Assembly: GCF_006345805.1 (NCBI RefSeq)
Contig: NW_021832133.1
Coordinates: 1 to 62,797 of the forward strand
Reading direction: 5' to 3'
Length of the DNA: 62,797 nucleotides
Origin: Octopus sinensis
Lineage: Eukaryota
Both the position numbers and the translations under genes were made by a program. The notes beneath the pieces were generated by a model. It saw only the letters and a program-made list of their open reading frames with translations, made no database searches and was not told where the DNA came from. Positions 25,195-25,790 of this stretch are shown here, piece after piece. The first letter of the stretch is position 1. Each line of letters begins with the position of its first letter.

Positions 25195-25790
25195 ACCACA
25201 GATATCACAGTGATAGGGTTTCTCTACCATGAATACGTCTATGTTTAGTTAAGCTACTGCCATTAGAGAAAGGTTTACCACAGATATCACAGTGATAGGG
25301 TTTCTCTACCATGAATACGTCTATGTTTAGTTAAGCTACTGCCATTAGAGAAAGGTTTACCACAGATATCACAGTGATAGGGTTTCTCTACCATGAATAC
25401 GTCTATGTTTAGTTAAGCTACTGCCATTAGAGAAAGGTTTACCACAGATATCACAGTGATAGGGTTTCTCTACCATGAATATGTCTAAGTTTAGTTAAGC
25501 TACTGCCATTAGAGAAAGGTTTACCACAGATATCACAGTGATAGGGTTTCTCTACCATGAATATGTCTATGTTTAGTTAAGCTACTGCCATTAGAGAAAG
25601 GTTTACCACAGATATCACAGTGATAGGGTTTCTCTACCATGAATACGTCTATGTTTAGTTAAGCTACTGCCATTAGAGAAAGGTTTACCACAGATATCAC
25701 AGTGATAGGGTTTCTCTACCATGAATACGTCTATGTTTAGTTAAGCTACTGCCATTAGAGAAAGGTTTACCACAGATATCACAAGGATAT
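25195..25790 (-). repeat. 82-bp minisatellite derived from one zinc-finger codon module (7 full units plus a partial)
   Basis: GATATC recurs at 25201, 25283, 25365, 25447, 25529, 25611, 25693, 25775. Each unit encodes [21 protein letters not shown] with a 2-bp linker deletion. Confidence 0.95.

Follow-up and report, generated by a model that had tools for sequence, protein, structure and literature searches.

What is a run of zinc-finger units that all share one and the same frameshift, and how could such a run have grown? This question is raised by a tandem array of 82-bp units in Octopus sinensis (assembly GCF_006345805.1, contig NW_021832133.1, positions 1 to 62,797; this whole stretch of 62.8 kb, the DNA analysed here, is referred to as the window). 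The window is a zinc-finger gene cluster with three paralogous single-exon poly-finger genes, A, B and C, whose fingers are of the CDICGKSF type. As detailed below, the array very probably is a non-coding minisatellite that arose inside a dead C2H2 zinc-finger pseudogene of octopus. The features on which the argument draws are collected in Table 1.

Table 1. Position of the array, of its host pseudogene and of neighbouring genes and repeats in the window.
Feature	Position	Strand	Remarks
Paralogue C	1-313	-	cut off by window edge
500-bp block directly upstream of C, A and B	314-820, 7298-7807, 31434-31936		93% identical
Putative Tc1/mariner-type transposase N-terminus and retrotransposon reverse transcriptase C-terminal parts	3225-3662, 13423-13884, 56550-57095	-, +, -	assigned by eye
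Paralogue A	6282-7297	-	ORF of 257 aa, ends at nonsense codon
158-bp satellite in 317-bp dimers	10449-12693		7 dimers, 97%
160-bp satellite	14237-23097		55 copies, 98% identity, 8.9 kb
About 2 1/3 more decayed fingers (three remnants)	24430-24609	-	2-bp deletion, Cys>Tyr, His>Asn
SINE inside pseudogene	24693-25061		82-92% identity to >15 other window copies
Finger Z, decayed	25057-25132	-	1-bp and 4-bp deletions, second Cys gone (HMM alignment)
Finger Y, decayed	25134-25209	-	+1 insertion, 8-bp deletion (HMM alignment)
18-bp Cys-knuckle TGTGATATCTGTGGTAAA of finger Y	25192-25209	-	identical to every unit's start; repeat ends here
Six overlapping 35-codon single-finger ORFs (ATG...TGA)	25205-25722	-	overlap 26 nt; present in most units
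Complete 82-bp units, n = 7	25210-25783	-	each one C2H2 finger plus linker net 2 bp short
Linker remnant TGENPYP, normal length	25784-25806	-	upstream of unit 1; 5' end of surviving pseudogene
Transposon-like repeat	25803-25977		abuts and truncates pseudogene's 5' end
SINE copy, inverted relative to 24693-25061	26084-26463		together with it brackets array
Further copies of transposon-like family	27029-27526, 29330-29490, 29873-30160		
Paralogue B	31937-32965	+	ORF of 342 aa

Tandem Repeats Finder places the array at 25180-25798 (period 82, 7.5 copies, 97% matches, score 1166), and self-comparison at an offset of 82 yields an exact repeated span of 25192-25783, i.e. 7 x 82 + 18 bp, which lies within a few bases of the interval 25195-25790 given in a preliminary description of this DNA. 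When the units are cut in register from the first Cys codon on the minus strand, from 25783 down to 25210, seven exact units are obtained, in keeping with the seven near-identical 82-bp units named there, and the finger sequence quoted in that description is the same in the array units. Five of the seven are identical and the other two carry one or two substitutions. The third unit (25619-25538) shows a single G>A at a CpG, which replaces Arg by His; the fourth (25537-25456) combines this G>A with an A>T by which Leu replaces the first zinc-binding His. The mean pairwise difference between units is 0.93%. The C2H2 pattern (C-x2-C-x12-H-x3-H) is matched in 6/7 units, with frames rotating 0, 2, 1, and the Pfam model zf-C2H2 (PF00096) recognizes the array unit with E = 1.4e-7 and 32 bits, compared to a cutoff of 25.2. 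The eighth copy in register matches only over its first 18 bases, TGTGATATCTGTGGTAAA, and diverges directly after GGTAAA. Minisatellites (VNTRs) are understood here as head-to-tail units of 10-100 bp with a total of roughly 0.5 kb or more. With 82 bp x 7.2 = 592 bp, arranged head to tail with 97% matches, the array is a minisatellite in this sense.

A nucleotide finger HMM, built from twenty 84-bp units of the neighbouring zinc-finger genes, aligns over the full length of the unit and opens a single 2-bp gap, which falls in the linker, where CATacAGGgGAG is replaced by CATG--GTAGAG. The linker had been described as carrying a 2-bp deletion. A net shortage of 2 bp is borne out by the HMM alignment, but not a deletion in one clean step, since the change from ACAGGA to GGTA takes more than one clean 2-bp deletion. 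A 30-nt linker motif that spans the lesion occurs exactly seven times in the window (0 expected by chance), each time in the array, and the linker upstream of unit 1 is of normal length and without the lesion.

The copy number and the unit length of the array were read from one assembly, and the copy number is the least secure figure. Near-identical tandem units are hard to assemble, and look-ups in public collections yielded no independent sequence of the locus; exact look-ups in public assemblies with six ORFs of the window, including the unit ORF, A, B and the ORFs flanking the array, gave no match. Mis-assembly or a systematic indel error as the source of the copy number or of the 82-bp length is nevertheless very unlikely. 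The lesion lies outside a homopolymer and is identical seven times, the neighbouring finger arrays stay in frame for 257-342 codons, and the 592 bp fit well inside one long read. Moreover, two internal units carry distinct substitutions and hence have been resolved as separate units.

The consequences of the lesion for the reading frame are straightforward. Read in the frame of the finger, the linker gives HGRETLSL and is followed by a TGA formed by the Cys-Asp codons of the next finger, which places a stop codon seven codons past each finger in the array. Because the linker is net 2 bp short, the reading frame rotates and stops after each finger. The array is closed in all six frames; the minus strand stays open for at most 41 codons and the plus strand for at most 25. 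A poly-finger gene consists of one ORF with an 84-bp period and seven-residue linkers of the TGEKPY type, and the array is no such gene. The view that the unit is a frameshifted finger, unable to encode a poly-finger protein, is thus well founded in the 82-bp period and the six closed frames.

The lesion at the same time produces, in every unit, a +1-frame ATG that is in frame with the following finger, and with the second finger of A and B the unit shares 83% identity. Both features could be cited in favour of an array that functions through 35-codon mini-ORFs, through antisense or small RNAs against the paralogous zinc-finger mRNAs, or as a protein-binding repeat. Yet no predicted protein identical or related to the 35-codon unit ORF was found in public collections, and a homologue search with a 41-aa version of the unit peptide returned no candidate. 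Rfam has no match in the array (sub-threshold miRNA-like matches sit in the (TA)n tract at 26460-26600), the predicted fold is no stabler than that of shuffled sequence (z = 0.58), and direct repeats alone do not make double-stranded RNA. Furthermore, one unit was kept despite the loss of a zinc-binding His, and the surroundings are decayed and rich in transposable elements. The array is without demonstrated function, and we regard a functional role as extremely unlikely.

What, then, is the array embedded in? Its host is a duplicated (non-processed) pseudogene, the fourth and dead member of the zinc-finger cluster of the window, i.e. a 5'-truncated, SINE-interrupted paralogue of genes A, B and C. 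The nearest relative of the unit is the second finger (F2) of A and B, and the unit is therefore finger 2 of an old paralogue. Every flanking finger remnant has its own indels or lost zinc ligands (Table 1), and beyond the SINE the remnants continue in the same order and direction as in an ordinary finger array. The relic thus combines 83% identity to F2 of A/B with several independent disabling lesions, as is expected of a duplicated pseudogene. A start codon, the first finger F1 and the 500-bp upstream block are absent at the 82-bp locus; block and F1 occur only at A, B and C. The block presumably represents a common promoter or 5' region that was copied with the genes by segmental duplication. 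Among the intact paralogues, fingers share an average identity of 74% with a maximum of 90.5% (6866 vs 6950). In a homologue search with the whole protein of paralogue B, generic vertebrate zinc-finger proteins dominate, with a best identity of 59%.

The repeats next to the relic allow for another origin of the array, as cargo or internal minisatellite of a transposable element, in which case it would be dispersed in the genome. Its 5' end adjoins a repeat family with arms that resemble terminal repeats (25811-25855 is 98% complementary to 29330-29374). This family is made up of AT-rich 23-bp subrepeats (TTATTTACTTTGTGTAAAAAA) followed by a GC-rich palindromic segment (GGTCCCGGTGCGCGCACTCGC) and, judged by its sequence, resembles DNA transposon or MITE ends. 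In addition, the locus is bracketed by inverted SINEs. These origins are highly improbable as well, given that no second copy of the 82-bp unit or of the linker motif exists in the 62.8 kb, that the flanking repeats recur several times without finger sequence, and that the remnants continue past the SINE in normal finger order and orientation. An exact metagenome scan for the frameshifted linker gave 0 matches, and metagenomes are uninformative for an animal genome. The inverted SINE pair (24767-25056 and 26372-26084, 90% identical and ~1 kb apart) encloses the array together with the transposon-like fragment; such a pair could favour replication stalling and local rearrangement.

A homologue search with only the first 60 aa of B, its N-terminus, gives two matches, one being the Octopus vulgaris protein P0121. 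It leads to a 20-kb O. vulgaris locus (GCA_951406725.2, OX597840.1:23108711-23128911), hereafter L001, which carries the orthologue of gene A (6335-7496). The flanks of this gene are 94-99% identical between the two loci, compared to 71-80% in a naive alignment of the finger arrays. The finger identity matrix of window gene A vs L001 pairs F1 with finger 1 (93%), F2 with finger 5 (93%) and F3 with finger 6 (94%). Behind F1 the O. vulgaris gene has a 252-bp block of three additional fingers, and near the 3' end it is the window copy that has extra fingers. Adjacent fingers of gene A are closer within a species than between species (YQEGNLTT/TQEGNLTT vs YQSVNLTI/YQSGNLTN). As these alignments show, gain, loss and homogenisation of whole fingers are active in this family over ~4-5% sequence divergence. 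The premise of the preliminary description that finger arrays of this kind turn over is therefore supported by the 252-bp difference between the gene A orthologues. In-frame stops lie at different sites in both copies of gene A, in the window at a TGA (6524-6526) after finger 9 and in O. vulgaris in the first linker, so that gene A may itself be decaying.

The 82-bp array is absent from L001, a 20-kb stretch that ends short of the orthologous position of the array. Besides gene A, L001 holds a partial duplicate of the 3' end of A, one copy of the 160-bp repeat and several SINEs, and past gene A its collinearity with the window is disrupted by transposon insertions and rearrangements. The segment 10001-10927 of L001 consists of 3.4 fingers, for which a 66-aa gene (P0121) is annotated, and of 600 bp that match the tail of gene A. 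It is a partial tandem duplicate of the 3' end of A without a counterpart at the corresponding place of the window. P0121 was considered as orthologue of the relic and ruled out on account of its opposite relative strand and of the downstream 600 bp that match the gene A tail.

For the growth of the minisatellite inside the pseudogene we infer the following order of events. First, the second finger of a truncated, SINE-split pseudogene would have gained a linker net 2 bp short. A misalignment would then have duplicated the 82-bp interval between the knuckle TGTGATATCTGTGGTAAA of this finger and the copy of the knuckle in the next finger, either by replication slippage or by unequal exchange between sister chromatids or homologues. 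Two 82-bp copies would finally have offered a longer stretch of homology for further unequal exchanges and thus for stepwise growth to seven. The edges of the array fall on the 18-bp invariant knuckle, which points to a first duplication by misaligned knuckles 82 bp apart. Slippage or unequal exchange had been put forward as the growth process in the preliminary description, and the coincidence of the array edges with a knuckle common to adjacent fingers agrees with it. As the lesion is present in 7/7 linkers and missing from the upstream linker, it is most likely older than the amplification. The proposal that the deletion came first hence remains the most parsimonious one with regard to amplification, but the lesion did not kill the gene, since the 5' truncation, the SINE split and independent lesions in every flanking finger are found in addition. 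The CpG G>A common to two adjacent units, together with one private change, requires that units were duplicated or converted at least once more when the first point mutation was already present. The array has thus gone through two or more rounds of growth, which means that it grew stepwise.

The same sequences could, in principle, also result from concerted evolution, in which some seven different 84-bp fingers would have been overwritten by the frameshifted unit through unequal exchange or gene conversion. The relic holds ~12 finger equivalents (7 units plus about 5 remnants), which is near the 11-13 fingers of the paralogues, and the fingers of gene A have been homogenised within species; net expansion and homogenisation of earlier fingers are not separable by sequence alone. 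We still consider concerted evolution quite unlikely, as the 82-bp period is perfect, the edges coincide sharply with the knuckle and none of the units is a mosaic or partly converted. In addition, remnants Y and Z were left untouched despite carrying the same knuckle.

With regard to the timing of the amplification, the decayed flanks compared to the near-identical units suggest that it probably took place inside an already old relic. The contrast in divergence is pronounced: units differ by 0.93% on average, SINE copies are 82-92% identical and the fingers of the paralogues 74%. Compared to the ~4-5% found in orthologous flanks, a unit diversity of 0.93% would mean that the units coalesced well after this lineage had separated from that of O. 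vulgaris. This date is very rough because it depends on three substitutions, of which one affects a CpG. Along the same lines, the array had been proposed as a neutral clock for finger-array expansion. A clock based on three substitutions is impossible to calibrate, and we do not retain this idea. It is also quite unlikely that the relic displays finger-array dynamics without selection, in the sense that exchange ran to homogeneity here, whereas the fingers of live paralogues, although subject to the same process as judged by their gain and loss relative to O. vulgaris, stay ~74% identical. If this were true, and if the array were a polymorphic VNTR or the seed of a growing satellite, it would provide direct, selection-free rates of finger gain and loss in cephalopod clusters.

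The array had further been taken as a snapshot of a ZNF gene turning into satellite. Satellite DNA extends over many kb in hundreds of copies or more and usually occupies several loci. With seven copies (592 bp) at one site within 62.8 kb the 82-bp array is a small minisatellite, and this part of the preliminary description goes too far. The window does contain two large satellites with units of 158 and 160 bp (Table 1), both located 2-15 kb from the 82-bp array. Their units have only a 31-bp stretch in common (87%). A derivation of these satellites from zinc fingers was ruled out, the finger HMM being without a match inside either. In L001 a single 135-bp homologue of the 160-bp unit (12679-12813, 94-97% identity) occurs outside any array. 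This lone O. vulgaris homologue suggests that the 160-bp satellite may have been amplified in the lineage of the window, or that its unit stems from a common transposon. With one copy in the O. vulgaris locus vs 55 in the window, the 160-bp repeat is a precedent for a growing satellite. The presence of unrelated satellites nearby further suggests that tandem amplification is general in this region rather than a property of zinc fingers, whose periodicity probably provided no more than the seed of the array.

In conclusion, what is new here is this locus, and the kinds to which it belongs, a duplicated pseudogene and a small minisatellite, are known. The array represents neither a new mechanism nor a new class of element, but a tidy, ordinary case of array slippage and expansion. 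Together with the 252-bp finger indel between the orthologues it forms a record of active finger turnover in octopus zinc-finger clusters. Lineage-specific tandem clusters of C2H2 genes are described for coleoid cephalopods in PMC12513265 and PMC10547256 (citing Albertin et al. 2015), and the window, with orthologue flanks 94-99% identical to those of O. vulgaris, is such a cluster. These papers cover expansion at the level of genes, whereas the octopus array is a minisatellite derived from a pseudogene; a search of the text of PMC12513265 and PMC10547256 showed that minisatellites of pseudogene origin are not mentioned there, and a wider search of the literature turned up no satellite derived from zinc fingers. 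Fragments of transposons or genes can seed satellites and minisatellites (reviewed in PMC9659126). As in those, a short pre-existing direct repeat would have seeded the first duplication, with subsequent expansion by unequal exchange. Compared to them, the octopus array is very small (seven copies) and has a single known locus and no sign of spread.

The zinc-finger array of PRDM9 is an 84-bp coding minisatellite with near-identical units (PMC3890296; PMC4874674). In both cases a single C2H2 finger with its linker is repeated in tandem in near-identical copies, and by analogy the octopus array may have been reshaped as PRDM9-type minisatellites are, i.e. by unequal exchange and slippage. PRDM9 units, however, are functional, keep the frame with a length of 84 bp and differ mainly in their DNA-contact codons, whereas the octopus units are 82 bp long with all frames closed. 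Their variation hits a zinc ligand (His>Leu) and a CpG (Arg>His), and neither a PR/SET domain nor any other coding part lies upstream, so that the array is not a coding minisatellite of the PRDM9 type. Closer in this respect are the disrupted paralogues summarised in PMC4874674, namely ruminant and primate PRDM7 and dog PRDM9, in which finger minisatellites likewise persist and change length after frameshifts or stops. There, the units stay at 84 bp and the lesions are scattered. In octopus, by contrast, the lesion lies inside the unit and was carried along by the amplification, which reset the period from 84 to 82 bp. The octopus array thereby shows that a dead zinc-finger gene can, through the periodic homology within its finger array, become the seed of a non-coding minisatellite.
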